Below, piece by piece: positions 21,664 to 44,924 of a DNA stretch of 64,000 nucleotides. This stretch comes from Macrostomum hystrix (Eukaryota; Animalia; Platyhelminthes). The notes beneath the pieces are model-generated. The model was given only the letters and a program-made list of their open reading frames with translations. It made no database searches and was not told the DNA's origin. The stretch spans positions 17,856,001-17,920,000 of the forward strand of contig CATNEN010000001.1 in assembly GCA_950097015.1 (NCBI GenBank), written 5' to 3'. Both the position numbers and the translations under genes were made by a program. Positions within the stretch are counted from its first letter, which is position 1; each line of letters opens with the position of its first letter.

Positions 21664-22752
21664 TATTAAATTAGTACTTTTGTGTGGCCATTATGTCATC
21701 TGGCATTATGCCTTTCAGCCATTTCATTTGTGGCCATTTTGACATATACTGGTTTTTAATACAGTACTTATGGAAATTCAATAATACCTATTATTATATA
21801 TGTAACATTAAAAGCTTAATTGAATCAAATGCTTGACAAAAAATAAATACAAAATTCTGAATTTTAATTTATTTACATATATTACTTTCAAATAAGGAAT
21901 ACAAAATTTTATCAGTAAGTTTAACATATATTTGTATTTTGAAAACTCCAATAGAGTGCTCTTGCACATTACATTGCATATTCTATATTCAGAAAAATAA
22001 ATATATAAAGCCTACATGTGGAGGCATAAAGCAATATACAAATTAGTTAAAAAATTATATAATGATTAGCAAATTTTTAATAAAAAATCAAATATGATTT
22101 ACACATTTTTTACAGTTTTAATTTTTAAATCATAACTTACAATGTTCCACAATGCATTAGGAAAAATTCTGAATTCAAAAGTCTAGTATTTGTCCTAAGA
22201 ATCCTAAATTATTAGAAGCCAACACTAAGCAGTATGCCATGATATTTTGCTCATTAACACTACATGTATACAAATAGAATTACAACTAAATTTTATTGCT
22301 AGAAAGAAAGCAAGATCAAATTAAATTAGTATTTGCTTATGGCTACTCCTTTGCATTCTAATTGCTAGATGTTGACCTTTAGTTGTCCACTTTTTATGTG
22401 TTTACAAGATAATATATTTTCAATATATCTTAATAAAAGCTACAAAATAATTTTCTGATTTTAGGTCTTGTTTTGCACATAGCACATTAGCCTAGTCTCA
22501 TTTGTTTTTCATCAAATGTATAACCTGGTGACTAACTATATCGGTATTAAATAGTAATATATAGTTATAATATTGTTTTATTTGATATGTTGCTTAGATT
22601 TTCTAGTGATCATATAAGTAGATTACTAAGACTATTGTACTTCTTATACCTAGGAGTGTGAGGATAATGATGATCATTAAAGTTATCAAGATTAAGTCGC
22701 CGATTAAAATGTACTAAACATATTTTTTGTTCCCTTTATTGCAGACTAACAA

Positions 22753-25700
22753 ATGTCAGGCGAACAAGGTGACACTGCTGGCAGCAGCAGCAGCAAAGCA
22801 CTAGTAAAATCAGCAGCAGGTGGCTCCAAAGTACCCCTGGCTGAAGCATTGAGCGCACTAAAATTGTCAACTGCGTCATCTGGTGCAGCTGAAACGGTGG
22901 CATCGGGCAGTAGTACAAGTGCACCTCGTCGCATGGACGAAGCCAAACAAAGGGAGTACAAATTCTGGGCAACCCAGCCTGTGCCACAGGGCTTCGCTGC
23001 TGAGTCTCAGCCAATTAGCGAGCCGATTGAAGCCGATAAGCCTAAAGAGGAGATTCGTCAGGAGCCCTACGACATTCCCAACATTTTTGATTGGAGCGAG
23101 GTCGACTTAGAAAACGAATCCCAACTGCAGGAGTTGTACACTCTGCTAAATGAGAACTATGTTGAAGATGAGGACGAGTTGTTCAGGTGAGTTTTTCTTT
23201 AGGAACTCACCTTAGGGTCATTCGTGTGTCAGGAACTCACCTGATGGCCATAAGAGTTTCAGAAATTCACCTGATGGTCATAAGAGTTTCAGAAATTCAC
23301 CTGATGGCCATAAGAGTTTCAGAAATTCACTTGATGGTCATAAGAGTTTCAGAAATTCACCTGATGGCCATAAGAGTTTCAGAAATTCACTTGATGGTCA
23401 TAAGAGTTTCAGAAATTCACCTGATGGTCATAAGAGTTTCAGAAATTCACCTGATGGTCATAAGAGTTTCAGAAATTCACTTGATGGTCATAAGAGTTTC
23501 AGAAATTCACTTGATGGTCATAAGAGTTTCAGAAATTCACTTGATGGTCATAAGAGTTTCAGAAATTCACCTGATGGTCATAAGAGTTTCAGAAATTCAC
23601 CTGATGGTCATAAGAGTTTCAGAAATTCACTTGATGGTCATAAGAGTTTCAGAAATTCACCTGATGGTCATAAGAGTTTCAGAAATTCACCTGATGGCCA
23701 TAAGAGTTTCAGAAATTCACTTGATGGTCATAAGAGTTTCAGAAATTCACCTGATGGTCATGGAGTTTGTCAGGAACTCATCTGAGGGTCATGGAGTGTC
23801 AGGAACTCATCTGAGGGTCATGGCGTTTGTTAGGAACTCACCTGAGGGTCATGGAGTGTCAGGAACTCACCTGAGGGTCATGGAGTTTCTCAGGTACTGA
23901 CCTGAGGGTCATGGAGTGTCAGGAACTCACCTGAGAGTCATGTAGTTTGTCAGGAACTCATCTGAGGGTCATGGAGTGTCAGGAACTCACCTGAGGGCCA
24001 TGGAGTGTCAGGAACTCACCTGAGAGTCATGTAGTTTGTCAGGAACTCACCCGAGGGTCATTGGGGTGTCAGGAACTCACCTGAGGGTCATGGAGTTTCT
24101 CAGGTACTGACCTGAGGGTCATGGAGTGTCAGGAACTCACCTGAGAGTCATGTAGTTTGTCAGGAACTCACCCGAGGGTCATTGGTGTGTCAGGAACTCA
24201 CTCTATGATCAGTTACTCTCGTCAGTCTCAAGTGTATTCCCCACGGAACCTACGCTCAGGTTTGACTATTCCCCGGCCTTCTTACGCTGGGCTCTGCAGC
24301 CGCCTGGTTGGCGACCCGACTGGCACGTCGGCGTCCGAGTTCGCAGCAATCGCAAACTGGTTGGCTTCATTAGCGCCATCCCTGCGGGCGTTCGGGTTCG
24401 CGATCGGCGCGTCGACATGGTCGAGATCAACTTCCTGTGCGTGCACAAACGATTGCGCGGCAAACGAGTCGCCCCCGTGCTCATCAAAGAGATTACCAGG
24501 CGGGTGAATCTCACTGGCCGATTTCAGGCTGTCTACACTGGCGGCGTTGTGCTGCCTAAACCCGTTGCCACCTGCCGGTATTATCACAGGTGGGCTTTTA
24601 TCATAGTTGGCTGATTCAAGGCTGTGTACTTACCCTAATTTATAGAGAATTAGAAATCTCATTGCTTAAGAACACCATTTTTCGTACTATTTGTGGGCTA
24701 CAAGCTTGGGTTATTAGTTTTGGCAAATATGCATTGGTCATTGTGACATGGTCGGAACACAGGTGTTTTCATCTGCCCTGACTTTTCTCATCGTCACACT
24801 TTCCTAATCCGTTGTAAATTTTACCCCTCTTCCCCTTTCGTCAGATCGCTTAACCCGCGCAAGCTGGTGGAGTGTCAGTTCAGCTCACTGCAGCGCAACA
24901 TGACCATGGCCCGAGCCATCAAACTGTACAAGCTGCCAGACGAGCCGAAGAATCCTAGCTTTCAGGTCATGCAGTCGAAGCATATGAGCCAGGCATTTCA
25001 GCTGCTCAAAGACTATTTGGCCACGTTTAAGCTGGCGCCTGAATTCAATGGTGAGATTTTTGCGACCATTTTACCTGGCCATCCTTAATCCCGTCTGGAA
25101 TCCCGTCACGAATTTGAGTCTAATCCCAAACCCCCGTCCTTTTTAATCATTATATCTCCTTCTGCTACATCGAAAGTCCCTTCCCAGATCCCCATGTCCT
25201 CCCGAATCCCTTCCCAGATCCCCATGTTATCCCGAATCCCTTCCAAGATCTCCATGTCATCCCGAATCCCTTCCCAGATCCCCATGTCCTCCCGAATCCC
25301 TTCCCAGATCCCCATGTTATCCCGAATCCCTTCCAAGATCTCCATGTCATCCCGAATCCCTTCCCAGATCTCCATGTCATCCCAAATCCCTTCCCAGATC
25401 CCCTTGTCCACCCAAATCCCTTCCCAGTTCCCCATGTCCTCCCGAATCCCTTCCCAAATCCCCATGTCCTCCCGAATCCCTTCCCAGATCTCCATGTCAT
25501 CCCGGATCCCTTCCCAGATCTCCATGTCCTCCCGAATCCCTTCCCAGATCTCCATGTCATTCCAAATCCCTTCCCAAATCCCCATGTCATCCCACATCCC
25601 TTTCCAGATCTCCATGTCATTTCAAATCGCTTCCCAGATCCCCATATCATCCCAAATCTCTTCCCAGATCCCCATGTCATCCCACATCCCTTCCCAGATC

Positions 25701-27176
25701 TCCATGTCATCCCACATCCCTTCCCAGATCCCCATGTCATCCCAAATCCCTTCCCAGATCTCCATGTCATCCCAAATCCCTTCCCAGATCTCCATGTCAT
25801 TTTAAATCGCTTCCCAGATCCCCATGTCATCCCGAATCCCTTCCCAGTTCCTATATGATATTAATTCCCTTCCCAGATCTCCATATCGTCCCAAAGCACT
25901 CTCCATGCCTTCTCATATCCCTTATCATCCTAAATGTCTTCACAGATACGCCAAAAACCTAGTAGGCCTGTTAATTAAAGGGGCTTTACGCCTATAAAAT
26001 CCTTTTTTATTTTGATTCGCTGAATCCCGCATTCAGCAAAGCTCCGATCCCATACGAACTTCCTGACTGTTTTCCACATCCAACAGAGGAGGAATTCGCC
26101 CATTGGTTCACACCTCGCGACGGCATTGTGCAGTCGTTTGTCTGTCTAGACCCGTCAGACAATAGCCGGGTAACAGACTTCGCCTCATTCTACTGCCTGC
26201 CTTCGTCCGTGATCAATCACCCGATTCACAAGACCCTGTTCGCAGCCTATTGCTTCTACAATGTGGCCCGCTCGGTTAGCTGGATAGACCTCATGCGAGA
26301 CCTGCTAGTGGAAGCGAAGCGACGCGGCTTCGACGTTGTCAACTGCTTGGATCTGATGGAGAATAAAAAGTTTTTAACTGATTTGAAATTCGGGGCCGGC
26401 GACGGCTACCTGCACTATTACCTGTACAATTGGCGCTGCTCGGACTTGAGGGCTGAAGATGTGAGTTCTATTCGTTGAGCATGCTAGGAAGCTGTCCTTA
26501 AAGCGGTTGCGGTTAGGAATATTAATTGAAAACCATTGTCTTGAGTTTGTTTTTATGCTTTTATTGAATCCGAAAGGTGTGTAGGGAATCAGATAGGTTT
26601 GTAGGGAATCAGATAGGTGTGTAGGGAATCAGATAGGTGTGTAGGGAATCAGATAGGTGTGTAGGGAATCAGATAGGTTTGTAGGGAATCAGATAGGTGT
26701 GTAGGAAATCAGATAGGTGTAGGAAATCAGATAGGTGTGTAGGGAATCAGATAGGTGTGTAGGGAATCAGATAGGTGTGTAGGGAATCAGATAGGTGTGT
26801 AGGGAATCAGATAGGTGTGTAGGGAATCAGATAGGTGTGTAGGGAATCAGATAGGTTTGTAGGGAATCAGATAGGTATGTAGGGAATCAGATAGGTGTGT
26901 AGGATTTAAAGGATTAAAGGATTTTGCGTGATAATGTTAGTAATATTGGCAGAATAAGAATGTCGTGGTCAGATTATAAATAATTTGTGATTGATTAAGA
27001 TGTTGTGACGAAGGATCCGAGATTTCTTATGTTATAGGAGTTTCGAAGAATCTGTTTAGTCTAAGTCTGTTGTTTGTTTGTTGTTTAATTCTAGGTGTTT
27101 CATTTAATTATCCCTATGTTAATTTTTATGATTAATTGATGACTTCAAATTTCAGGTTGGCCTAGTACTCCAGTGA
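22753..27176 (+). CDS. NMT: Glycylpeptide N-tetradecanoyltransferase (N-myristoyltransferase), 454 aa, 5 exons
   Basis: Exons 22753-23186, 24260-24589, 24845-25050, 26087-26460, 27156-27176, all GT-AG and in frame. Motifs [36 protein letters not shown] and C-terminal VGLVLQ*; AATAAA at 27744. Confidence 0.97.
23220..24200. repeat. ~30-bp minisatellite in NMT intron 1
   Basis: cacctgatggtcataagagtttcagaaatt units grading into caggaactcacctgagggtcatggag variants. Confidence 0.95.
25178..25885. repeat. 30-bp minisatellite in NMT intron 3
   Basis: cccgaatcccttcccagatc(c/t)ccatgtcat units. Confidence 0.95.
26575..26905. repeat. 20-bp minisatellite in NMT intron 4
   Basis: gtagggaatcagataggtgt units. 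Confidence 0.95.
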
Positions 27177-27982
27177 AGTTGTTCAAAGTCCATTGCCATC
27201 GTGCAACCAACTGATTCGACACTGCATACTGACAGTAGTATGATGCGAGAATATGTTTTTATTAATACCACGCGTACTCAGACACGATATCACTGAACAG
27301 GTCCCATTGGATATGCTCTAATTGTTTACTCTTGACTAAATTCTATCAACACTTGCTCTTCTTTCCTGCTAGACTGGACTAAAGTGTCTGTTTAGGCCCC
27401 AACACTATCTAGCTGGATAAATGCCCGTGAGTCCTTTTATCCACGCAAGGAGCAGTAGTTTAAATAATTGTATTATCCATTTTTCTAATTTCTTTTGGTG
27501 TTACTATCAGATCGAATGCTAGTTTATTCTGTTCAGCTTTGTGGATTTATATAATTTTTTTATTTAGTCCTATTTCATAAAATACGAATGCTAAGTTGTA
27601 GAGTCAGTAAATTTATTAGCTTATGAATATAACTCTACGCGATTCGTTAAATTTTACTACCCTACTTGTATGTAAAATTGTTTGTTTTGTTAGAAAATCT
27701 TCAATTGTTTTAACTTATGTTAACTTTATGTGTTATGCCGCACAATAAATGCTTTATATTGCTTAGGCTTGATAGAATTTATGAGTAATACATTCTTGAC
27801 CTTTCATTTTTATATTATTGTTATAAAAATTAAGGCAGTATTCAATCAAAGACTTATGATCAGTCCCCCAATCATGGCACTGAGAGAGACATCCGATTTA
27901 TGAGGATAGAGAAGGCAACCTTTAGAGTCGTATGGGTATTGATCATAGGATAGAGTATTGATCATTTTATTAAGTATCTAAG

Positions 27983-28067
27983 GATGCTATGATGACACTG
28001 ATAGGGACATCTGAATTTGTCCAAAACATATTTGAAGAAATTGGCTACAAGCCATTATCTGAGCGTC
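27983..28067 (+). ncRNA. SNORD74: Box C/D snoRNA, SNORD74/snR64-like, type B copy 1
   Basis: Terminal stem gatgc/gcgtc, C box ATGATGA 27989, guide GATAGGGACA-T-D' CTGA 28011, C' TTGAAGA, D box CTGA 28059. Confidence 0.85.
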
Positions 28068-28966
28068 GGCATCGTATTTTAATATTTTTGCCACACAGCG
28101 GGATGTATAGAAATTAGACCCGGACAGTTAGTGAAAAATCAACATAGTAAACTCGGTAATCTACACCTCTGCCCTCAATGTACATAGAACTGGGAATCTA
28201 CACCTCTGCCCTCAATGTACATAGAACTGGAATCTACACCTCTGCCCTCAATGTACATAGAACTGGAATCTACACCTCTGCCCTCAATGTACATAGAACT
28301 GGGAATCTACACCTCTGCCCTCAATGTACATAGAACTGGGAATCTACACCTCTGCCCTCAATGTACATAGAACTGGGAATCTACACCTCTGCCCTCAATG
28401 TACATAAAACTGGAATCTACACCTCTGCCCTCAATGTACATAGAACTGGGAATCTACACCTCTGCCCTCAATGTACATAGAACTGGAATCTACACCTCTG
28501 CCCTCAATGTACATAGAACTGGGAATCTACACCTCTGCCCCCAATGTACATGGAACTGGGAATCTATACCTCTGCCCCCAATGTACATGGAACTGGGAAT
28601 CTATACCTCTGCCCCCAATGTACATAGAACTGGGAATCTATACCTCTGCCGCCAATGTACATAAAACTGGGAATCTACACCTCTGCCGCCAATGTACATA
28701 GAACTGGGAATCTACACCTGCCCTCAATGTACATAGAACTGGGAATCTACACCTGCCCTCAATGTACATGGAACTGGGACTCTACATTGAACCGAGAATC
28801 TATACTTGACTAAGTTGTTTTTAACCTAAAATTCTCATATCATTTTTTCAGGTGCCATAAAATGTCTTTTTATGACACTAGTTTCCTTTTTTCTTGTCAG
28901 ACTTTTGACTATTGTTAAATTATTTAGGACTTATAAACTAAAACTTTATTATAACACAAAGACATG

Positions 28967-29049
28967 TACCATGATGACACCGATAGGGACATCTGAATAC
29001 TAAAAATATTGAAGACTAATAAGGTATTGTTGCCTTAACTGTCTGAGTA
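28967..29049 (+). ncRNA. SNORD74: Box C/D snoRNA, SNORD74-like, type C copy 1
   Basis: Stem tac/gta, C box 28971, guide GATAGGGACA, D' 28993, C' TTGAAGA, D box 29043. Confidence 0.8.
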
Positions 29050-29257
29050 TTTGTTTTTGTGTTTTAGTTTCTAAGGGCTCACATGTTAATTTTCCAGATT
29101 ATGTAACTAATTTTACATTGCTGCTTAATCCAATAACACTAATAAGGACTTCCAAAAAATTTTAGGATAAACAAGGCAACCTTTTGATTCGTAAATTATT
29201 GTCTGATGGTTACTGAAAATAGGCAAGAGTATTGATTGTTTAATTAATCTATCTAAG

Positions 29258-29342
29258 GATGCTATGATGACACTGATAGGGACATCTGAAATTGTCCAAA
29301 ACATATTTGAAGAAATTGGCTACTAGCCATTATCTGAGCATC
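29258..29342 (+). ncRNA. SNORD74: Box C/D snoRNA, SNORD74-like, type B copy 2
   Basis: Stem gatgc/gcatc, C box 29264, D box 29334, same guide. Confidence 0.85.
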
Positions 29343-30349
29343 GGCATCGTATTTTAATATTTTTGCCACACAGCGGGATGTATAGAAATTAGACCCGGAC
29401 AGTTAGTGAAAAATCAACATAGTAAACTCGGTAATCTACAGCTCTGCCCTCAATGTACATAGAACTGGAATCTACACCTCTGCCCTCAATGTACATAGAA
29501 CTGGAATCTACACCTCTGCCCTCAATGTACATAGAACTGGAATCTACACCTCTGCCCTCAATGTACATTGAACTGGGAATCTACACCTCTGCCCTCAATG
29601 TACATAGAACTGGAATCTACACCTCTGCCCTCAATGTACATAGAACTGGAATCTACACCTCTGCCCTCAATGTACATAGAACTGGGAATCTACACCTCTG
29701 CCCTCAATGTACATAGAACTGGGAATCTACACCTCTGCCCTCAATGTACATAGAACTGGGAATCTACACATCTGCCCTCAATGTACATAAAACTGGAATC
29801 TACACCTCTGCCCTCAATGTACATAGAACTGGGAATCTACACCTCTGCCCTCAATGTACATAGAACTGGAATCTACACCTCTGCCCTCAATGTACATAGA
29901 ACTGGGAATCTACACCTCTGCCCCCAATGTACATGGAACTGGGAATCTATACCTCTGCCCCCAATGTACATGGAACTGGGAATCTATACCTCTGCCCCCA
30001 ATGTACATAGAACTGGGAATCTATACCTCTGCCGCCAATGTACATAAAACTGGGAATCTACACCTCTGCCGCCAATGTACATAGAACTGGGAATCTACAC
30101 CTGCCCTCAATGTACATAGAACTGGGAATCTACACCTGCCCTCAATGTACATGGAACTGGGACTCTACATTGAACCGAGAATCTATACTTGACTAAGTTG
30201 TTTTTAACCTAAAATTCTCATATCATTTTTTCAGGTGCCATAAAATGTCTTTTTATGACACTAGTTTCCTTTTTTCTTGTCAGACTTTTGACTATTGTTA
30301 AATTATTTAGGACTTATAAACTAAAACTTTATTATAACACAAAGACATG

Positions 30350-30432
30350 TACCATGATGACACCGATAGGGACATCTGAATACTAAAAATATTGAAGACT
30401 AATAAGGTATTGTTGCCTTAACTGTCTGAGTA
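30350..30432 (+). ncRNA. SNORD74: Box C/D snoRNA, SNORD74-like, type C copy 2
   Basis: C box 30354, D box 30426, same guide. Confidence 0.8.
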
Positions 30433-30640
30433 TTTGTTTTTGTGTTTTAGTTTCTAAGGGCTCACATGTTAATTTTCCAGATTATGTAACTAATTTTACA
30501 TTGCTGCTTAATCCAATAACACTAATAAGGACTTCCAAAAAATTTTAGGATAAACAAGGCAACCTTTTGATTCGTAAATTATTGTCTGAGGGTTACTGAA
30601 AATAGGCAAGAGTATTGATTGTTTAATTAATCTATCTAAG

Positions 30641-30725
30641 GATGCTATGATGACACTGATAGGGACATCTGAAATTGTCCAAAACATATTTGAAGAAATT
30701 GGCTACTAGCCATTATCTGAGCATC
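30641..30725 (+). ncRNA. SNORD74: Box C/D snoRNA, SNORD74-like, type B copy 3
   Basis: C box 30647, D box 30717, stem gatgc/gcatc. Confidence 0.85.
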
Positions 30726-31223
30726 GGCATCGTATTTTAATATTTTTGCCACACAGCGGGATGTATAGAAATTAGACCCGGACAGTTAGTGAAAAATCAA
30801 CATAGTAAACTCGGTAATCTACAGCTCTGCCCTCAATGTACATAGAACTGGAATCTACACATCTGCCCTCAATGTACATAAAACTGGAATCTACACCTCT
30901 GCCCTCAATGTACATAGAACTGGGAATCTACACCTCTGCCCCCAATGTACATAGAACTGGGAATCTACACCTCTGCCCCCAATGTACATAGAACTGGGAA
31001 TCTACACCTCTGCCCCCAATGTACATGGAACTGGTACTCTACATTGAACCGAGAATCTCTACTTGACTAAGTTGTTTTTAACCTAAAATACTCTTATCAT
31101 TTTTTCAGGTGCCATAAAATGTCGTTTTATGACACTAGTTTCCTTTTTTCTTGTCAGACTTTTGACTATTGTTAAATTATTTAGGACTTATAAACTAAAA
31201 CTTTATTTTAACACAAAGACATG

Positions 31224-31306
31224 TACCATGATGACACCGATAGGGACATCTGAATACTAAAAATATTGAAGACTAATAAGGTATTGTTGCCTTAACTGTC
31301 TGAGTA
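31224..31306 (+). ncRNA. SNORD74: Box C/D snoRNA, SNORD74-like, type C copy 3
   Basis: C box 31228, D box 31300, same guide. Confidence 0.8.
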
Positions 31307-31514
31307 TTTGTTTTTGTGTTTTAGTTTCTAAGGGCTCACATGTTAATTTTCCAGATTATGTAACTAATTTTACATTGCTGCTTAATCCAATAACACTAAT
31401 AAGGACTTCCAAAAAATTTTAGGATAAACAAGGCAACCTTTTGATTCGTAAATTATTGTCTGATGGTTACTGAAAATAGGCAAGAGTATTGATTGTTTAA
31501 TTAATCTATCTAAG

Positions 31515-31599
31515 GATGCTATGATGACACTGATAGGGACATCTGAAATTGTCCAAAACATATTTGAAGAAATTGGCTACAAGCCATTATCTGAGCATC
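31515..31599 (+). ncRNA. SNORD74: Box C/D snoRNA, SNORD74-like, type B copy 4
   Basis: C box 31521, D box 31591, stem gatgc/gcatc. Confidence 0.85.
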
Positions 31600-32238
31600 G
31601 GCATCGTATTTTAATATTTTTGCCACACAGCGGGATGTATAGAAATTAGACCCGGACAGTTAGTGAAAAATCAACATAGTAAACTCGGTAATCTACAGCT
31701 CTGCCCTCAATGTACATAGAACTGGAATCTACACCTCTGCCCTCAATGTACATAGAACTGGAATCTACACCTCTGCCCTCAATGTACATAGAACTGGAAT
31801 CTACACCTCTGCCCTCAATGTACATAGAACTGGAATCTACACCTCTGCCCTCAATGTACATTGAACTGGGAATCTACACCTCTGCCCTCAATGTACATAG
31901 AACTGGAATCTACACCTCTGCCCTCAATGTACATAGAACTGGGAATCTACACCTCTGCCCCCAATGTACATGGAACTGGGAATCTACACCTCTGCCGCCA
32001 ATGTACATAGAACTGGGAATCTACACCTGCCCTCAATGTACATGGAACTGGGACTCTACATTGAACCGAGAATCTATACTTGACTAAGTTGTTTTTAACC
32101 TAAAATTCTCATATCATTTTTTTAGGTGCCATAAAATGTCTTTATGACACTAGTTTCCTTTTTTCTTGTCAGACTTTTGACTATTGTTAAATTATTTAGG
32201 ACTTATAAACTAAAAGTTTATTGTAACACAAAAACATG

Positions 32239-32321
32239 TACCAGGATGACACCGATAGGGACATCTGAATACTAAAAAGTATTGAAGATAAATAGGTATT
32301 GTTGCCTTAACTGTCTGAGTA
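32239..32321 (+). ncRNA. SNORD74: Box C/D snoRNA, SNORD74-like, type C copy 4 (variant C box AGGATGA)
   Basis: C box variant 32243, intact guide and D', D box 32315. Confidence 0.65.
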
Positions 32322-32402
32322 TAGCTTTTTGTGTTTTCGTTTCTAAGGCCTCGCAGGTTAATTTTTCAGATCAGCTTTCATGTTTTTCTCAACTTCCGCT
32401 CA

Positions 32403-32484
32403 ATCCTATGATGACACTGATAGGGACATCTGAATGCGTTGACATTGAAGATATCCAAGGCTTTTGCCTTCAGATTCTGAGGAT
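32403..32484 (+). ncRNA. SNORD74: Box C/D snoRNA, SNORD74-like, type M
   Basis: Stem atcc/ggat, C box 32408, guide GATAGGGACA-T-CTGA, C' TTGAAGA, D box 32477. Confidence 0.85.
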
Positions 32485-32514
32485 CGAGCACGAAACGCAT
32501 TTGTTTTTTATTTA

Positions 32515-33280
32515 AATGTACATTCAACCAACCCTATGCATCACAGCCAATGTACATTTAACCAACCCTATGCATCACAGCCAATGTACATTCAACCAAC
32601 CCTATGCGTCACAGCCAATGTACATTCAACCAACCCTATGCATCTCAGCCAATGTACATTCAACCAACCCTATGCATCACAGCCAATGTACATTCAACCA
32701 GTCCTATGCATCACAGATAATGTACATTCAACCAACCCTATGCATCACAGCCAATGTACATTTAACCAACCCTATACATCACAGCCAATGTACATTTAAC
32801 CAACCCTATGCATCACAGCCAATGTACATTCAACCAACCCTATGCATCACAGCCAATGTACATTTAACCAACCCTATACATCACAGCCAATGTACATTCA
32901 ACCAACCCTATGCATCACAGCCAATGTACATTCAACCAACCCTATGCATCACAGCCAATGTACATTCAACCAACCCTATGCATCACAGCCAATGTACATT
33001 CAACCAGTCCTATGCATCACAGCCAATGTACATTCAACCAGTCCTATACATCACAGCCAATGTACATTCAACCAACCCTATGCATCACAGCCAATGTACA
33101 TTTAACCAACCCTATGCATCTCAGCCAATGTACATTCAACCAACCCTATGCATCACAGCCAATGTACATTTAACCAACCCTATGCATCACAGCCAATGTA
33201 CATTCAACCAACCCTATGCGTCACAGCCAATGTACATTCAACCAACCCTATGCATCTCAGCCAATGTACATTCAACTAAT
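32515..33280. repeat. 34-bp minisatellite (aatgtacattcaaccaaccctatgcatcacagcc)
   Basis: About 22 copies; shares the caatgtacat core with the upstream 32/33-bp repeat. Confidence 0.95.
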
Positions 33281-33334
33281 GTACTGTTTTTAATTTTCAA
33301 GAAGCGACATTAACTTTTGCTTATGTAATCACAG

Positions 33335-33439
33335 TATCCAATACGATGATGAAAAAGATAGGGACATCAGAAAGCTTAACTGTTCTGTTTGTTGACAAAC
33401 GAAGGTATGTAGCCTTCTTAAAATTCTGAGTATTGGATA
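33335..33439 (+). ncRNA. SNORD74: Box C/D snoRNA, SNORD74-like, type N
   Basis: Perfect 10-bp terminal stem TATCCAATAC/GTATTGGATA, C box 33346, guide GATAGGGACA, D' variant CAGA, D box 33426. Confidence 0.85.
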
Positions 33440-33555
33440 ATAATAAATTTATTATAAAAAAATTGATTAATCGTATAAATTTTCCTGTTTCAGCTAGAGT
33501 TCGCTCGTCTATTTTTATTTCCCTAAATATCTAATTAGACAAACAGACTTGCTAA

Positions 33556-33903
<348 letters not shown>

Positions 33904-34324
33904 TTTAACTGCGGTTTATCATTAATATTGTTTATTAAATTATTAACTTAGGAAAACAGCTCTCTGTAGTTATTTAAGGTCGAATATTTCACCATCAGTT
34001 GGTTGGGACACATCGTGCGCTTTTGTCTGACTCGCCTACTCACACTGTGAGCAGCATATTCTGATTAGTAAAATAGTAATTAATTTAGACTCTAACATCT
34101 TTAGCTTTAGCTATAAATATATATTCACTCCCTAGTAACAACAAGTTAGATTTTTACTGTTTCAGTTTTTTGGTGCTTTAAAAATTATATAAATTAGTAA
34201 AAGTGCTACAAGTTTCGATTTTGTTTGTCAAGAAATAAACTTGAGAACTTGGTTTAGTTTTAAATTTAACAAATCGTTTGTCTTTTTTATTCTTTAATGT
34301 TTCTTTTTTTAAAAACCCTATGAC

Positions 34325-34890
34325 TCGTCATCTCTCCCCTGTCTCATCTCCTATCTCCTCTCTCCCCTGTCTCATCTCTCCCCTGTCTCATCTCTCTCCT
34401 ATCTCATCTCTCCCCTGTCTCATCTCTCTCCTATCTCATCTCTCCCCTATCTCATCTCTCCCCTGTCTCATCTCTCCTATCTCATCTCTCCCCTATCTCA
34501 TCTCTCCCCTGTCTCATCTCTCTCCTATCTCATCTCTCCCCTGTCTTATCTCTCCCCTGTCTCATCTCTCTCCTATCTAATCTCTCCCCTGTCTTATCTT
34601 TCCCATATTTTTTCTCTGGCCTGTCTCGTCTCTCCCCTGTCTCACTCATCTCTCCCCCGTCCCATCTCTCCCCCATCTCATCTCTCCCCCGTCCCATCTC
34701 TCCCCTGTCCCATCTCTCCCCCGTCCCATCTCTCCCCTGTCTCATCTCTCCTGTGTCTCACTCATCTCTCCCCCGTCTCATCTCTCCCCCGTCCCATCTC
34801 TCCCCTGTCCCATCTCTCCCCCGTCCCATCTCTCCCCTGTCTCATCTCTCCTGTGTCTCACTCATCTCTCCCCCGTCTCATCTCTCCACA
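34325..34890. repeat. 17-bp CT-rich minisatellite (tctcatctctcccctg)
   Basis: Same family as 15148-15468. Confidence 0.9.
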
Positions 34891-35186
34891 GTAAATTAGT
34901 CCCACTATCTTAATTTTTGTCTTTGGCCCGCAGTGTAAATAAGATATCCGACCCTTAGTATAGCATGTCCGATAGTTGGTTTTAATCACGCCACTTATTA
35001 TCAACCTCCCTGCACAAGCGTCTGCTGTTGGCACTGTCAGGTTTAGTCGGACCATTTATTCTTTTTTCGAAAAACTCTACCCAGTAATGAATGACCCTTC
35101 ATGAATCATGACCCACCGCTGTCTGGGGCGACCTCGCAAAGATGAGTTTCAATGAATGAATGCGAGTAGGTGGCTTTTATGGCCTC

Positions 35187-35193
35187 TATAAAT
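35187..35193 (+). promoter_or_regulatory. Candidate TATA box for ELOVL
   Basis: TATAAAT ~200 nt upstream of the ELOVL ATG, next to GC-richer sequence. Confidence 0.35.
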
Positions 35194-35393
35194 ATAGCGA
35201 CCCCGCTCTGGTATTTATATTACTAGCAAATTGTACGTTTATTTCTTTAATTAATTCTAGACCTTATCGAAATTGCTTTCTGACTCATTTTTTAATTCTT
35301 AAATTCGCTAATTTCCAGCTGCTCAGGTGTCAATTTTGCCAGCTGTCAATTTAATTGACTCTTTGCCGACAGTCCGTCCGATACACGGCAGCT

Positions 35394-38393
35394 ATGGACT
35401 TGGCCTGGATTGCCGATAGGGCGGGACACGCATACGACTTCTATCTGTGGACACTTAGTAGGGCCGGTGAGTGCTGCATCATTCACATACTCATGTCTGT
35501 CATTGTACTGCCGCAGTGTCTGTAACAGTCTGTCATCTCACCTCCTGCAGTGTCTGTAACAGTCTGTCATCTCACTTCCAATAGTGTCTGTAACAATCTG
35601 TCATCTCCCCTCCTACAGGCTTGTCTGTAACTGTAAGGACTTTAGACTGAAGGCTGGCCAAGAATTGATTTACAACTGTGTCGAGCCAGTTGGGAGTTGC
35701 GGCTCGTTATATTATCGCTCTGTTCTATTTGACCCTAGGGCTTAGGGCACGGCTGGGCCCCGCGGGCCAGCCACCTCAACCAGCACGCAAACCACGCGTG
35801 ACACTGGTAAACAACTCAGCTTGCACTAAGAACCGACAGACGTAAACACTCGATGGTAGCAAAGCCATGATACAAAGTGGTGCAGAGTGAACGCATTAAA
35901 TAACATTCAAGAGGCCATTGAATAACATCACAGTAACAGTCTGTCATCTCACCTCCTACAGTGTCTGTAACAGTCTGTCATCTCACCTCCTACAGTGTCT
36001 GTAACAATCTGTCATCTCACCTCCTACAGTGTCTGTAACAGTCTGTCATCTCACCTCCTACAGTGTCTGTAACAGTCTGTCATCTCACCTCCTACAGTGT
36101 CTGTAACAGTCTGTCATCTCACCTCCTACAGTGTCTGTAACAGTCTGTCATCTCACCTCCTACAGTGTCTGTAACAGTCTGTCATCTCACCTCCTACAGT
36201 GTTTGTAACAGTCTGTCATCTCACCTCCTACAGGCTTGTATGTAACAGTCTGTCATCTCACCTCCTACAGTGTCTGTAACAGTCTGTCATCTCACCTCCT
36301 ACAGTGTCTGTAACAGTCTGTCATCTCACCTCTTACAGTGTTTGTAACAGTCTGTCATCTCACCTCCTACAGGCTTGTCTGTAACAGTCTGTCATCTCAC
36401 CTCCTACAGTGTCTGTAACAGTCTGTCATCTCACCTCCTACAGTGTCTGTAACAGTCTGTCATCTCCCCTCCTAGAGGCTTGTCTGTAACAGTTTGAAAT
36501 CTCACCTACAGTCTGTCACCGCATCCCGTGACTGTCCCCATCCCACAGACAAACGCGTGAATGGGTGGTTCCTGATGCAGGACTACTGGCCCACCTGGGC
36601 TCTGATGATTGCTTACCTGCTGGCTGTGCACTTCGGCAAGAAGCTTATGGCCAACAGGGAGCCATTCTGCCTTCGTTGGCCGCTAATTATCTACAATGCT
36701 GGCTTGGTTGTGCTCAACTTTCACATCTTCTGGGAGGTTAGACCGCTTGCAGTTAATGGATGAGTAGACTAGAGTCTGCTTAGTAGATGATAAGAAGACT
36801 GGTAGATGGATGAGTAGACTGGTAGGTTTATGAGTAGACTGGTAGGTTTATGAGTAGACTGGTAGGTTTATGAGTAGACTGGTAGGTTGATAAGTAGACT
36901 GGTAGATCGATAAGTAGACTGGTAGATGGATGAGTAGACTGGTAGGTTGATAAGTAGACTGGTAGATCGATAAGTAGACTGGTAGATGGATGAGTAGACT
37001 GGTAGGTTGATAAGTAGACTGGTAGATCGATAAGTAGACTGGTAGATCAGAAGTAATGGCAATGAGTTGATCTGCTTCCCCTGAAACTGTTTTGCGCTCT
37101 TCAGCTGCTGTACTGCTCACTGAAGCGCAGCTACAACTACCTGTGCCAGCCAGTTGACTACAGCGACAATCCGTTCGAGGTTCGCATCGCTAAAGCTCTA
37201 TGGTGGTACTACTTTTCAAAGTGCATCGAATTCATGGACACAATATTCTTTGTATTGCGCAAGAAGAATCACCTGATCAGCTTTCTGCATGTGTACCATC
37301 ACGCCACAATGTTTCCTCTGTGGTGGATTGGCGTCAAGTGGGTCGCCGGCGGGCAGTCGTTTCTAGGCGCCATGATCAACTCGTTTGTTCACGTGGTCAT
37401 GTATACCTACTATGGCCTGTGCGCTCTGGGCGAGTCAGTGCACAAGTATCTGTGGTGGAAGCGCTACCTCACCAGAATGCAGCTGGTTAGTTGTAGCCAA
37501 CTGCCTGTGCACCCTTACTGATGTCTGTAGAGTGCTGGTACCTCTCTACTCCTTCAGGGTGTCTTCATTTCATTCGTTACTTCAGGGTGTCTTCATTTCA
37601 TTCGTTACTTCAGGGTGTCTTCATTTCATTCGTTACTTCAGGGTGTCTTCATTTCATTCGTTACTTCAGGGTGTCTTCATTTCATTCGTTACTTCAGGGT
37701 GTCTTCATTTCATTCGTTACTTCAGGGTGTCTTCATTTGCTCCGTTACTTCAGGGTGTCTTCATTTCTTTCGTTACTTCAGGGTGTTTTCATTTCTTTCG
37801 TTACTTCAGGGTGTTTTCATTTCTTTCGTTACTTCAGGGTGTTTTCATTTCTTTCGTTACTTCAGGGTGTCTTCATTTGCTCCGTTACTTCAGGGTGTCT
37901 TCATTTCTTTCGTTACTTCAGGGTGTTTTCATTTCTTTCGTTACTTCAGGGTGTTTTCATTTCTTTCGTTACTTCAGGGTGTTTTCATTTCATTCGTTAC
38001 TTCAGGGTGTTTTCATTTCTTTCGTTACTTCAGGGTGTCTTCATTTCGCCGTATCCTCTGTTTTCTCAGCTGCCCATTCTATCTCATCTGGAGCCCTAAC
38101 CACCCATCGCCCAATCCTGCCAGGTGCAATTCTTCATCGGTATGGCTGTTGGCAGTCACTCGCTGCTCACAGGCTGCGGCGCTGTGCCCATCTGGATGGA
38201 GTACGGAGCCATGTTCTATGGCATGTCCATGATCGCACTGTTTGCCAACTTCTATCACAAGGAATACGTCACCAGGTACAATGCCAGTAGGAAGGCTAAG
38301 CTATCAACGCAACCGAATGGCAACGGAGTCCATAGCAACGGCGATAGCAACGGATTTGCTAGGCAGCATAGCAACGGAAAGAAGACTAATTGA
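35394..38393 (+). CDS. ELOVL4: Very-long-chain fatty acid elongase, ELOVL4-like, 303 aa, 4 exons
   Basis: Exons 35394-35466, 36549-36736, 37105-37485, 38124-38393, all GT-AG and in frame. Motifs [34 protein letters not shown] and C-terminal dilysine KKTN*. Confidence 0.95.
35514..36515. repeat. 34-bp minisatellite in ELOVL intron 1, interrupted by a solo LTR
   Basis: cagtgtctgtaacagtctgtcatctcacctccta units. Confidence 0.95.
35632..35932 (+). mobile_element. Solo LTR, 301 bp
   Basis: TGT...ACA termini, 5-bp TSD GTAAC (35627-35631, 35933-35937), ATTAAA ~35 nt before the 3' end. Confidence 0.8.
36758..37048. repeat. 20-bp minisatellite in ELOVL intron 2
   Basis: tgagtagactggtaggttga-type units. 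Confidence 0.9.
37552..38047. repeat. 28-bp minisatellite in ELOVL intron 3
   Basis: ttcagggtgtcttcatttcattcgttac units. Confidence 0.95.
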
Positions 38394-40709
38394 TAAATAG
38401 AAAGCAACTTTCTAGAACTAACCCACCTACTACTGGTCAGTAGTCTGTTTTGTAGAAATGTTTTACTTGTTTTTTTTATACAAAAAATTTTTTTTTAACT
38501 TTAATTTACTACAACTCAGCGCTTGCGGCTTGCTGGATCATTTGAAGCAACAAAGGTTCTCTTCTCAATCTCAGTTCACGCTTTCTATTTAGCTTATATT
38601 CACATTTTACTCTTTCCTTAGCAATTTGTTTTATTCTAATGCAATTGTTTCACTCGCACCTTATTTGTTGTCACCGCTATCGCCCGGGCGAACTAAACAC
38701 ATTTTATTACATAATTCTCTGTTCTCTGTTCGCTTCAATTGTTTTAACATTGTATTGCGTTGCCGACCACACAAACATGACGTTGTATCAAAGCTAAAAG
38801 ACAAACAAAAATATTTATAGATATTAGACATTTCTGTCTTACTGTTACATTGAATTCCTGTTTTTTCATCTCTCTATTTATTATTTGCTTGGCATAAATA
38901 TATCAGATTATCAGTTTTAAACTGCTTTAGTAGGATTTTTACTAACTAATAACCGTTTAACATCTCTGAATGCTCTGAGATTGCCTGGCTGCATTTATTT
39001 AGCTCACCGGCCCCTTTAACCACTCCTGTCTTATCTGCACTGTGTCTGGTCATCCCTTCTCTTCTCCCCAGTCTCATCCCTCCACTGTCTCATTCCACCA
39101 CTTTCTCATCTCTCCCGTGTCTCATCTCCACCGTGTCTTATCCCTCCCCTATCTCTTCTCTCCATGTCTCATCTCTCCCGTGCCTCATCTCTCTAAGTCT
39201 CATCTCTCCCGTTCCTCATCTCTCCCGTGTCTCATCTCTCCCGTGCCTCATCTCTCTAAGTCTCATCTCTACCGTGTCTCATCTCTCCCGTGCCTCATCT
39301 CTCTAACCCGTATAAAACGGAATGGTCACAAAAAAGGGGCTGTGACCGTTGTTGTGACTGTCATGGTCACATGTTACCGTTAGTGACCACGTTTTGTGAC
39401 CGCCATGGTCTCATGTTACCACTTGGTGTCCATAAAATGTGACCATTTGTCCGGGTCACCATGTGACCGTTCATTGTGACCGTATTTTGTGACCGTTATG
39501 TTCAGGGTCACCATGTGACCGTTCACTGTGACCGTATTTTGTGACCGTCATGTTCAGGGTCACCATGTGACCGTTCACTGTGACCGTATTTTGTGACCGT
39601 TATGTTCAGGGTCACCACGTGACCGTTCACTGTGACCGTATTTTGTGACCGTTATGTTCAGGGTCACCATGTGACCGTTCACTGTGACCATATTTTGTGA
39701 CCGTTATGTTCAGGGTCACCATGTGACCGTTCACTGTGACCGTATTTTGTGACCGTTATGTTCAGGGTCACCATGTGACCGTTCACTGTGACCGTATTTT
39801 GTGACCGTCATGTTCAGGGTCACCATGTGACCGTTCACTGTGACCGTATTTTGTGACCGTCATGTTCAGGGTCACCATGTGACCGTTCACTGTGACCGTA
39901 TTTTGTGACCGTCATGTTCAGGGTCACCATGTGACCGTTCACTGTGACCATATTTTGTGACCGTTATGTTCAGGGTCACCATGTGACCGTTCACTGTGAC
40001 CATATTTTGTGACCGTTATGTTCAGGGTCACCATGTGACCGTTCACTGTGACCGTATTTTGTGACCGTTATGTTCAGGGTCACCATGTGACCGTTCACTG
40101 TGACCGTATTTTGTGACAATACATTCTACTTGCTCCCAGCTTGTCCTTTAAATATTAGCTAGTGGAGCAGCTGAATGCACTGCGGTCAGTTGGCATTGAA
40201 TGGCATTGACTATGAACAGATCAAGCGTGCGGTGTCTGTCTATGTGAAGGGAGGTTTCAGCAGTACAGACGGCGATAAAATGCTCCGGACCCTGTACCGA
40301 GCAGTCTTCTCAACCGAGGAGCTAACGACCCGTTCCTACACCGGCCGCAAGACAAAAAAGGATGGTCCGCCGCCGAAGCCGGAAGTATCTAAGAAGAAAA
40401 AGTTCGCCATTAAGGCTTTTATAAGTGGGCTAAAGTTCCCTGAGGAATTTCCGAAGAAGTCCTATGCCACGATTTTCAAGCGCACTGCCTTCTGCGCTGC
40501 CCGAAAATTGAAGTCACCACTCAAAGTGACACCCAGCGGTCGCACTGGAAGGAACAAGGGCGGAAGGAAGGAAGCCGGTGATGAAGAAGGCGGCGGTGAC
40601 CTTGACAGCGCCAAGGAACTTGACCTTGACGGCGGTGACGTTGACGCCAAGGAGGACGACGACAGTGGCGACGACGACGAAGCCGCAGCCTCTAGCGACT
40701 CTTCCGGCA

Positions 40710-40793
40710 GCTTGGCGAACGGCTTCCCACATTCGCGCGCAAGCGCAAGTGCCAAGCGGACAGTCCGAGGAATCGGCTGGCAAAGAAGAAGCC
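40710..40793 (+). ncRNA. Candidate HDV-like self-cleaving ribozyme at the LINE 5' end
   Basis: P1 GCTTGG/CCAAGC, P2 GGCTTC/GAAGCC, P3 CAC/GTG, GG after P1, P4 with a GGAA loop, then G-C-AAA; G1 is the first base after the TSD. L3 is atypical. Confidence 0.55.
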
Positions 40794-41083
40794 AGGGGGG
40801 GGGAGGAGCCCGCGGACTCAGAGTAACATCTGAGGTCCGTGGGAAAAACCCCCTCCAACAGAGTGGTGACCCACTAACCACGGATCACACCTCTATAACC
40901 AATAGAACAGTGAGGCACCCTGGTGCCAACTCGGACGAGGAGGAGGAGGAGGAGGAGAAGGAGAAAGAAGAGTCGGAAGGAGAAAATAGAGAAGACGGAG
41001 GAACGAGAAGGACCGAAAAAGGAAAGAAAAGCAAAGAAAAAGAAAAAAATCAGAAAAAAAATCAGAGAGAAAATAACAAGAAT

Positions 41084-44000: not shown

Positions 44001-44924
44001 CTGCAAAGAACAATGGACAAATTCTACCGCTATATATGGAGCAGCAAAACGAAAGAACCACTACGAGAAATGGAAGAGAAACAAATGAACATGTGGGACG
44101 TAAGAAGATCAATGGGAGTCAAATGTATCCAGAGAAAAATCGAGATCGCGCACTGGAGACGAATGGGACACGTTCTTAGACTACCGAACACCAGCCTCAC
44201 AAAGATCTGCGTAATGGGATGGAATAAAAGGTTAGAAAAGGCGAAAAGACCGAAGAAGAGGAGAACAACTATAATTACGTATTGGAGAAAACTGGTTCGG
44301 AAAGCCAAACTCGACCCATTGAAGGTCGGACAATACGCGAACGACAGAACCAAGTGGAAAGAGACCATCAGAAAGAGAGACGCCGAATGGGAGAAGATCG
44401 AACGGCTAAGATGCAAAGGTAGAGAAGGAAACGAAACCGTAGAACTGGAAGAAAGGAACCAGGCCAGCAGCCCCCAAACGGAAGAAAACGAACTAACAGG
44501 CTTCAGATGCTGGGAAGTAAACTGCGGAAAGATATGTAGATCGAGAGGTGGGCTGGCCATCCACCGGAAGAGAATGCACAAAACCGACACGGGAATAAGA
44601 ATGAAATGCGGAAGGTGTAACGACGAGTTCAGAACGGAAGCAACAAGGAAAAATCACGAGCAATGGTGCTCAGGAGGCAGAACGGAAGGAACAAAAAGAG
44701 AGTGCAACAACTGCAAGAGATGGATCAGTAAGACGAATTATGCAAGACATAGAAGGCAATGCGTAGAGGACCCGCCGGCAATCAAAAGCCCGAGGACGGT
44801 AGACGAGGTGACAAGAACGGTGGCGAGAATTCATAAGAGGAAGAGAGCGGAATGCCGATACTGCAAGAAATGGCTGTCAGCAACAAACATGGCACGGCAC
44901 GAACGAGGATGCGGCGAGCATTAG
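41084..44924 (+). CDS. RTE polyprotein: 2A-like peptide, APE endonuclease, reverse transcriptase and C-terminal zinc fingers; one +1 frameshift in A8 at 43264-43271
   Basis: Deleting one A restores LLDLKKAYPRVNKPALW and a ~1279-aa ORF; no other disruptions seen. Confidence 0.9.

Follow-up and report, generated by a model that had tools for sequence, protein, structure and literature searches.

A cis-duplicated cluster of ten putative box C/D snoRNA genes sharing one predicted LSU rRNA guide in Macrostomum hystrix

The window analysed here (64,000 nt of Macrostomum hystrix, positions 17,856,001 to 17,920,000 of contig CATNEN010000001.1, assembly GCA_950097015.1) contained a locus that, with a probability of about 0.8 as judged from its sequence, was a cis-duplicated cluster of ten box C/D snoRNA genes plus four dead relics, which would be the functional counterparts of U74/SNORD74, snR64, snoR44, and Me28S-Cm2645 and would share a D'-side guide, one precursor, and a history of block amplification. 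All ten units were predicted to guide one and the same 2'-O-methylation in LSU rRNA. Human U74/SNORD74 (Rfam RF00284, clan CL00069) is hosted in GAS5 intron 1, and its counterparts are yeast snR64, plant snoR44/J54, Drosophila Me28S-Cm2645, and Aspergillus Afu_335. The cluster looked real, yet it represented an ordinary kind of gene array, in which nothing is surprising to a specialist.

Ten intact units and their predicted rRNA target

The units were captured by a generic C/D scan (C box [AG]TGATGA or A[TG]GATGA, CTGA 45-130 nt downstream, and a terminal stem with 4 bp or more), which was applied to both strands of the whole 64 kb (128 kb) and matched ten units and no others. They lay on the plus strand between window positions 27983 and 33439 and fell into four body types (B in four copies, C in four copies, M, and N):

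27983-28067, plus strand: snoRNA B1; stem GAUGC/GCGUC (one G-U pair), C box 27989-27995, guide 28000-28010, D' CTGA, C' TGAAGA, hairpin GGCU/AGCC, D box 28059-28062
28966-29050, plus strand: snoRNA C1; stem GUAC/GUAU, C box 28971-28977, guide 28982-28992, D' CTGA, C' TGAAGA, hairpin AAGG/CCUU, D box 29043-29046
29258-29342, plus strand: snoRNA B2; stem GAUGC/GCAUC
30349-30433, plus strand: snoRNA C2; identical to C1
30641-30725, plus strand: snoRNA B3; identical to B2
31223-31307, plus strand: snoRNA C3; identical to C1
31515-31599, plus strand: snoRNA B4; recognized by the box/guide scan
32238-32322, plus strand: snoRNA C4; diverged C copy with C box AGGATGA, unlike C1 in 6/88 columns
32403-32484, plus strand: snoRNA M; stem AUCC/GGAU, C box 32408-32414, guide 32419-32429, hairpin AAGGC/GCCUU, D box 32477-32480
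33335-33439, plus strand: snoRNA N; 10-bp terminal stem UAUCCAAUAC/GUAUUGGAUA, C box 33346-33352, guide 33356-33367, D' CAGA, hairpin GAAGG/CCUUC, D box 33426-33429

Every unit harbored a C box (ATGATGA, except for AGGATGA in C4), the guide GATAGGGACA(T) ahead of D' (CTGA; CAGA in N), a C'-like box (TGAAGA; degenerate TGACAA in N), an internal hairpin between C' and D (predicted by folding for every body type), a D box (CTGA), and a terminal stem, with a C-to-D span of 73-84 nt. The terminal stems were 4-10 bp long, with one unpaired nucleotide ahead of the C box and none past the D box, and they comprised four unrelated sequences, all pairing: GAUGC/GCAUC, GUAC/GUAU, AUCC/GGAU, and UAUCCAAUAC/GUAUUGGAUA. 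With respect to the box C/D class, a RUGAUGA C box (AGGAUGA in C4), a CUGA D box, and a closing terminal stem were found in 10/10 units; the guide GAUAGGGACA was followed by a single U and then by D', a spacing that fits the class (guide of at least 10 nt). The guide sequence GATAGGGACAT was present ten times in the window, always on the plus strand (28000, 28982, 29275, 30365, 30658, 31239, 31532, 32254, 32419, and 33357), versus a mean of 1.35 in shuffled sequences, and none of the 100 shuffles reached ten. The terminal stems of B, C, and M were short (4-5 bp), and the predicted minimum-energy fold of the B units paired guide GGACA with downstream UGUCC.

The host genome's own 28S contained CACUGUCCCUAUCUAC, and the guide was complementary to UGUCCCUAUC of this 28S over 10 bp in nine units and over 11 bp in N, which paired the fifth nucleotide upstream of D' to the first C of CCC (about C2660). 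The Rfam consensus guides of SNORD74 (GGUAGGGACAUCUGA) and Afu_335 (GAUAGGGACAuCU) represented the same guide in the same register. U74 has been assigned to 28S C3820 (PMC6856654) and snR64 to 25S C2337 (PMC2806949), and snR64, snoR44, and U74/Z18 have been equated, with the guide on the D' side (PMC2653536). The features of the SNORD74/snR64/snoR44/Me28S-Cm2645 group, namely a complement of LSU CUGUCCCUA(U/C)C and a +5 position on the first C of CCC, were both present here. A search of the full rDNA unit for a further target, on the D side, gave only 8- to 10-nt matches at sites differing by type; the sole D-side 10-mer (B1/B4 versus 5' ETS) was judged to be a chance match and was lost in B2/B3. 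Because the D side had no conserved rRNA guide and carried a short C'-D hairpin in that place instead, the units would be single-guide RNAs. A 10-bp duplex, as found in nine of the ten units, is at the low end for functional guides.

The initial annotation had proposed ten units of ~80-105 nt with a stem, boxes, and an invariant guide, together with their four body types and box details, all of which the motif counts and the scan confirmed. Its assignment of these units to a single rRNA site, that of SNORD74/snR64, gained support from the host-28S pairing, the +5 register, and the Rfam consensus guides, and the target tract that it had named as a check was present in the host 28S; its "first C" was correct if taken as the one that opens the CCC run and incorrect if taken as the C in "AC". 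Its count of ~14 paralogues was reached only when four decayed relics were added to the ten intact genes. The Rfam match that it had likewise named as a check (SNORD74/snR64 families) did not appear: the whole window gave no match at gathering thresholds, and permissive scans gave sub-threshold C/D matches only, including three families of clan CL00069, the best scores being 22.5 bits (threshold 41) for SNORD74, 23.3 (48) for Me28S-Cm2645, and 24.6 (48) for snoR44_J54.

Box C/D units with the identical module were borne by 28 metagenome contigs, and only 2/20 module-bearing contigs used as an Rfam control reached the gathering score, so this criterion was insensitive outside the seed taxa. Extra genomic copies were sought with three patterns: the module TGATGA-N(3-14)-TAGGGACANCTGA (C box-guide-D') was found only at this locus in the 220-Mb assembly, and six one-mismatch sites elsewhere in the genome were rejected as coding-like or minisatellite sequence without D'. 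A search of one paper library found no description of Macrostomum snoRNAs.

Relics, minisatellites, and duplication history

Four relics, in which the C box, guide, and D' were lost, were recognized:

27867-27933, plus strand: relic P0; decayed M/B-like copy with C box ATCATGG, guide GAGAGAGACAT, D' CCGA, and D CGTA
29130-29206, plus strand: relic P1; decayed boxes and guide, CTGA retained at 29203-29206, alignment to P0
30513-30589, plus strand: relic P2; block 99.8% identical to block 1
31387-31463, plus strand: relic P3; block identity and relic alignment

The local alignment of P0 to M had a z of 5.6, and 1/300 shuffles was equally good; neither the relic alignments to N nor those to the C4-M spacer reached significance. 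The relics show what unconstrained copies look like. The repeated GAUAAACAAGGCAACCUUUUGAUUC/guaaau (slash, candidate splice site) was considered as a mini-exon and rejected, since its alignment corresponded to the 3' half of a decayed P relic; being part of that relic, the repetition of GAUAAACAAGGCAACCUUUUGAUUC was no evidence for an exon.

Minisatellites of 37 bp and 34 bp sat between the units, and no unit lay inside them:

28150-28786, no strand: 37-bp minisatellite, 17.4 copies, between B1 and C1
29425-30169, no strand: 37-bp minisatellite, 20.4 copies
30808-31043, no strand: 37-bp minisatellite, 6.4 copies
31682-32060, no strand: 36/37-bp minisatellite, 10.4 copies
32515-33276, no strand: 34-bp minisatellite, 22.4 copies, between M and N

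These were separate intervening arrays, and the earlier wording "disguised as satellite DNA" was overstated. The ORFs of at least 120 aa in the interval (31710-32087 and 32516-33313) fell within minisatellites.

The central blocks X1-X3 were 98.9-99.8% identical, non-functional flanks included (one difference in 638 positions between X1 and X2), and the edge blocks were about 81-90% identical. Between body types, 22-26 of the 26 positions from C box to D' were identical, and the D'-to-D part had 50-63% identity in gapped alignment, near shuffle level. The near-identity of the three central blocks points to a probable recent duplication, and the likeness of the body types in little but boxes and guide points to what would be old paralogues under constraint; the initial annotation's older divergent paralogues plus recent block duplication fit these identities (99-99.8% central and about 81-90% edge). 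The four old body types would have diverged except in boxes, guide, and stems, and a P-B-minisatellite-C block would then have been amplified to four copies via unequal crossing-over, the central copies being the youngest.

A less probable reading, still to be taken seriously, is that only a minority of copies work, the central blocks and C4 being neutral by-products of minisatellite-associated unequal crossing-over, some of them silent or decaying, and the effective genes numbering about 3-4. The conservation of X1-X3 is uninformative on selection because the non-functional flanks are equally identical, and the recent copies give no readout of selection either, B1 differing at 3/85 positions next to an after-B flank with 100% identity; in addition, C4 has a changed C box and differs from C1 at 6/88 positions in the RNA versus 6/178 in the upstream flank, C4 is possibly under relaxed constraint or decaying, and the four relics indicate that copies here do die. 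In contrast, every box, guide, and pairing terminal stem was kept in 10/10 units, and, if there is one common precursor, intact copies would all be processed alike. An origin of the three near-identical blocks in misassembly (haplotypes or collapsed reads placed in tandem), with a lower true copy number, is improbable: X1 and X2 do differ at only 1/638 positions, but the minisatellite copy numbers differ among blocks (17.4, 20.4, 6.4, and 10.4), the blocks are set apart by 1-7 substitutions, and they lie within a 27.5-Mb contig of a 42-contig assembly. Chance box-like motifs in AT-rich repeats, or pieces of mobile elements, are already disfavoured and very hard to credit as the source of the units, because the AT-rich, repeat-laden surroundings and the missing Rfam gathering match are set against a guide expected 1.35 times and observed ten times, a generic scan with no other match in 128 kb counting both strands, the same 26-nt module plus pairing stem in four unrelated bodies, exact complementarity of this module to a universally conserved methylated 28S site, and an interval from which poly(A) tails, transposon ORFs, and target-site duplications were all absent.

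Genomic setting and proposed expression

The cluster occupied the gap between an NMT gene and an ATP synthase subunit c gene, and the neighbouring NMT, ATP-synt_C, and ELO genes were all on the plus strand, the same as the units. ATP synthase subunit c is a candidate host or downstream gene, and the cluster may lie in its 5' leader:

33494-33906, plus strand: ATP synthase subunit c exon; CDS 33559-33903 plus stop; PF00137, E 2e-13

Candidate AG/GT sites flanked each unit (e.g. ...gccacacag/CGGG...CUCG/guaauc after B units), and an acceptor-like ...uuuccuguuucag ended at 33493, 54 nt after N (candidate acceptor ...cuguuucag/, 54 nt beyond N). Because the units had the same orientation as the flanking genes and no upstream motif in common, they would most likely be excised from one Pol II precursor, which most likely starts just past the NMT gene (about 27.86 kb) and would correspond either to the introns of a host transcript with short exons or to the 5' leader (intron/outron) of the ATP synthase subunit c gene. 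AATAAA was found directly past N and TATAAAT at 33474, and a separate ATP synthase c promoter is thus also possible.

The proposed mechanism follows what is established for box C/D RNAs: with the terminal stem closing them, the C and D boxes would form a kink-turn assembling Snu13/15.5K, Nop56, Nop58, and fibrillarin; the 10- to 11-nt guide would pair with 28S UGUCCCUAUC(U), and fibrillarin would 2'-O-methylate the first C of CCC (about C2660), opposite the fifth position upstream of D'. A wider proposal, put forward tentatively, is that the whole array represents the 5' leader (introns/outron) of the mitochondrial ATP synthase c pre-mRNA and that canonical rRNA guides are amplified across the Macrostomum genome in a lineage-specific manner, driven by minisatellite-laden introns.

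Comparison with known snoRNA arrays

The units resembled U74/SNORD74 in being box C/D RNAs with a D'-side guide and the identical core UAGGGACAUCUGA, and their register picked the same conserved C in LSU CUGUCCCUA(U/C)C (PMC6856654, PMC2806949, PMC2653536). The flatworm locus differed from U74/SNORD74 in (i) its ten copies versus one, (ii) bodies unrelated to the Rfam seeds (22.5 bits versus 41), (iii) a C-to-D span that was longer (73-84 nt) and included a C'-D hairpin, and (iv) its position beside or within the gene for ATP synthase c rather than in one resembling GAS5. Duplication in cis that places snoRNA paralogues in consecutive introns of a single host gene has been described as "intragenic duplication and divergence", with GAS5-like genes of vertebrates and the U80 pair of chicken as examples (PMC2653536). 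The flatworm cluster shared with these duplicates the tandem arrangement on one strand and the diverged bodies with guide and structural elements kept, but it displayed a higher copy number per specificity and minisatellites within the repeat unit, and its exon-intron structure was putative. Mammalian SNORD115/SNORD116 are imprinted, brain-expressed tandem arrays of orphan snoRNAs with dozens of copies; here, too, snoRNA and flanking host sequence were amplified head to tail, but the guide of the flatworm array was a canonical one for rRNA, and its recent blocks numbered only four.

No other source of this guide, which serves a universally conserved methylation of LSU rRNA, was found in the genome, and with this locus a group described chiefly in vertebrates, yeast, plants, and flies gains a flatworm member. 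The locus also constitutes a natural experiment, in which four old bodies kept only boxes, guide, stems, and hairpin and four relics at the same locus lost them, thereby revealing the constrained parts of a single-guide box C/D RNA. Such arrays resemble satellites and are thus relevant to annotation, and they also concern snoRNA dosage. If the cluster does lie in the ATP synthase c leader, each transcript of a highly expressed OXPHOS gene would release up to ten guide copies; if the genome-wide amplification is real, it would be an invertebrate counterpart, for housekeeping guides, of the mammalian SNORD115/116 arrays.

Box C/D snoRNA units and relic copies

Ten units with full box C/D snoRNA anatomy were found on the + strand when 27600–33700 was read through, falling into four body types (B, C, M, and N). 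A generic scan of both strands of the 64-kb window for a C box followed at 45–130 nt by CTGA, with a terminal stem of 4 bp or more, recovered these ten units and no further match, confirming the snoRNA array proposed in the initial annotation. The sequence GATAGGGACAT occurred exactly 10 times, always on the + strand, while dinucleotide shuffles gave a mean of 1.35 (0/100 reached ten).

snoRNA units (limits including the terminal stem) and relic units
27983–28067, +, snoRNA B1
28966–29050, +, snoRNA C1
29258–29342, +, snoRNA B2
30349–30433, +, snoRNA C2
30641–30725, +, snoRNA B3
31223–31307, +, snoRNA C3
31515–31599, +, snoRNA B4
32238–32322, +, snoRNA C4
32403–32484, +, snoRNA M
33335–33439, +, snoRNA N
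27867–27933, relic P0, decayed copy before B1
29130–29206, relic P1, decayed copy before B2
30513–30589, relic P2, decayed copy before B3
31387–31463, relic P3, decayed copy before B4

The units displayed a common layout: (i) stem, 1 free nucleotide, AUGAUGA, 4 nucleotides, GAUAGGGACA, U, and CUGA (D') in the 5' part and (ii) a 12–21-nt spacer, UGAAGA (C'), short hairpin, CUGA (D), and stem after D'. There were three exceptions, namely AGGAUGA in C4 and, in N, D' CAGA and a degenerate C'. The hairpin between C' and D was predicted at 4–6 bp in all four types. In the B units, the predicted minimum-energy fold joined GGACA of the guide to a UGUCC lying 8 nt beyond D' (28005–28022 in B1, same place in B2–B4) and thereby masked half of the guide; this UGUCC was a copy of part of the rRNA target, but the pairing may be a chance match of a 5-mer within ~45 nt.

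Each B unit was preceded by a decayed copy. P0 aligned with M across the whole 5' module (z 5.6) and contained C box ATCATGG, guide GAGAGAGACAT, and D' CCGA; its 3' half retained the AAGGC..CCUU hairpin and had lost the D box. The earlier count of ~14 paralogues holds only with relics included: intact genes numbered 10, the other four being relics.

Guide, rRNA target, and counterparts elsewhere

The assembly comprised 220 Mb in 42 contigs, with rDNA on contigs C15 and C17. The genome's own 28S contained ...GAUUCCCACUGUCCCUAUCUACUAUCUAGCG..., and the tract around the predicted methylation site was CACUGUCCCUAUC, with the first C of CCC as the predicted methylated nucleotide. The guide paired with UGUCCCUAUC over 10 bp (11 bp in N), and, counted from D' (U1, A2, C3, A4, G5), its fifth nucleotide paired with that C, which is nucleotide 2660 within the Rfam-delimited 28S. 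The same register was seen in the Rfam consensus of SNORD74 (...GGUAGGGACAUCUGA) and Afu_335 (...GAUAGGGACAuCU). U74 has been assigned to human 28S C3820 within CACTGTCCCTACC (PMC6856654), and snR64 to yeast 25S C2337 (PMC2806949); a chicken survey placed snR64, snoR44, and U74/Z18 in one group with the guide on the D' side (PMC2653536). The shared register and the complementarity to a tract present in the host 28S thus upheld the annotated SNORD74/snR64 target, if its "first C" means the first of the CCC run.

When the sequences upstream of D were compared with the full rDNA unit for a D-side guide, only 8–10-nt matches were obtained, at places differing by type; the units are single-guide RNAs. 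A second target considered for B1 (28040–28058) and B4 (31572–31590), in which D-side ACAAGCCAUU gave a 10-mer match in the rDNA 5' external transcribed spacer (transcript-sense position 1208 of L014, the rDNA unit used), was judged to be chance; the match was lost in B2 and B3 via an A-to-T change.

The 15-mer GATAGGGACATCTGA had nine occurrences and TGATGA-N(3-14)-TAGGGACANCTGA eight in the genome, all inside the cluster. Six one-mismatch sites elsewhere were rejected as coding-like or minisatellite sequence without D'. Judged from the assembled genome, the cluster is the sole source of this guide.

The window units matched no Rfam family at gathering score, and the annotated family was in this respect not recovered: the sub-threshold matches included Afu_335 and, in clan CL00069, SNORD74 (22.5 bits), Me28S-Cm2645 (23.3), and snoR44_J54 (24.6). 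As a control, metagenome contigs were scanned for the identical module, which was present in 28, nearly all in a recognisable box C/D unit. Since only 2 of the 20 then run through Rfam reached gathering (Afu_335, 89.6 bits; Me28S-Cm2645, 48.1), the miss reflects the reach of the models, not a different kind of RNA. Because 27 of these contigs carried one copy and one carried two, ten copies is a high number relative to this sample, whose contigs are short. The two-copy contig, L032 (6132–6525), had identical copies 365 bp apart at 59% G+C. Some environmental counterparts (contigs L031, L039, and L047) were double guides: their D-side AGAUAGUAGAU was complementary to AUCUACUAUCU, which adjoins the 3' side of the first target in 28S. 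Such an RNA would cover two neighbouring 28S sites; in the flatworm units, a hairpin takes the place of the D-side guide.

Genomic setting and candidate precursor

The array filled the 5.8-kb gap between the N-myristoyltransferase and ATP synthase subunit c genes, and all genes lay on the + strand.

Neighbouring genes
ends ~27175 (AATAAA ~27746), +, N-myristoyltransferase gene (PF01233, PF02799), upstream of the cluster
33559–33903, +, CDS of ATP synthase subunit c, single exon (PF00137)
downstream of ATP synthase subunit c, +, ELO-family elongase gene

The best full-length matches of ATP synthase subunit c were from Macrostomum lignano (80%) and other flatworms, and its CDS included a 39-residue presequence. 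At 40175–44924 lay a LINE-like element whose two adjoining ORFs contained endonuclease and reverse-transcriptase domains.

Separate promoters are unlikely, because no upstream motif was common to the four types. We prefer one Pol II precursor from ~27.86 kb, from which the snoRNAs would be released; it may correspond to the ATP synthase c 5' leader. The units were flanked by plausible splice sites, for example (i) ...gccacacag/CGGG...AACUCG/guaauc, 40 nt after each B, (ii) ...uuuuccag/, located 48 nt past each C, and (iii) an acceptor after N, where acceptor-like uuuccuguuucag ended at 33493, 54 nt after N and before the ATP synthase subunit c exon. Against the leader reading, AATAAA directly after N and TATAAAT at 33474 would equally permit a separate host gene plus a separate ATP synthase c promoter.

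Divergence and amplification of the cluster

Between body types, 22–26 of 26 positions were identical from C box to D', and the D'-to-D segment showed 50–63% identity (gapped alignment), hardly above shuffles (z 0.2–3.7). The terminal stems were four unrelated sequences, all pairing (GAUGC/GCAUC, GUAC/GUAU, AUCC/GGAU, and UAUCCAAUAC/GUAUUGGAUA), and the elements lost in the relics were exactly those kept by the ten units. Together, these features point to old paralogues selected for snoRNP assembly and this single guide. The recent copies are uninformative on selection, because B1 and B2 had 100% identical downstream flanks while their RNAs differed at 3/85 positions. C4 differed from C1 at 6/88 columns, C box included (upstream flank of C4, 6/178), and may be decaying.

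The inter-minisatellite C–P–B segments of blocks 1–3, the near-identical repeats of relic P, B, minisatellite, and C, were 98.9–99.8% identical; compared to them, the C4 segment was ~90% and the P0–B1 segment ~81% identical. Minisatellite copies in the four blocks numbered 17.4, 20.4, 6.4, and 10.4. Young central and older edge copies are the product expected of unequal crossing-over in a tandem array, and this pattern argues against the near-identical blocks being a simple assembly duplication.

The minisatellites were separate elements, so the snoRNAs were not satellite in disguise as had been suggested. Those at 28150–28786 (37-bp) and 32515–33276 (34-bp) had different units with a common core CAAUGUACAU, which contained palindrome ATGTACAT; the 5' flank of C-type units was ACATGTACC. 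Nearly all N-myristoyltransferase and ELO introns in the window held their own 16–37-bp minisatellite of 0.2–0.8 kb (22733–27175, 35390–38390; 25177–37000 generally), e.g., 23200–24200, 25177–25895, 26566–26903, 35933–36507, 36783–37050, and 37540–38040. The cluster arrays thus follow a pattern general to introns in this genome.

Segment identities and body divergence bore out the proposed old divergent paralogues plus recent four-block duplication, and a mono-specific cluster of SNORD74/snR64-type snoRNAs with this history is supported. Paralogous snoRNAs that arose by cis-duplication and kept their guides as their bodies diverged are well documented (PMC2653536), and the cluster resembled those paralogues in both respects. 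The array is a further case of this already described class, here with ten intact genes.
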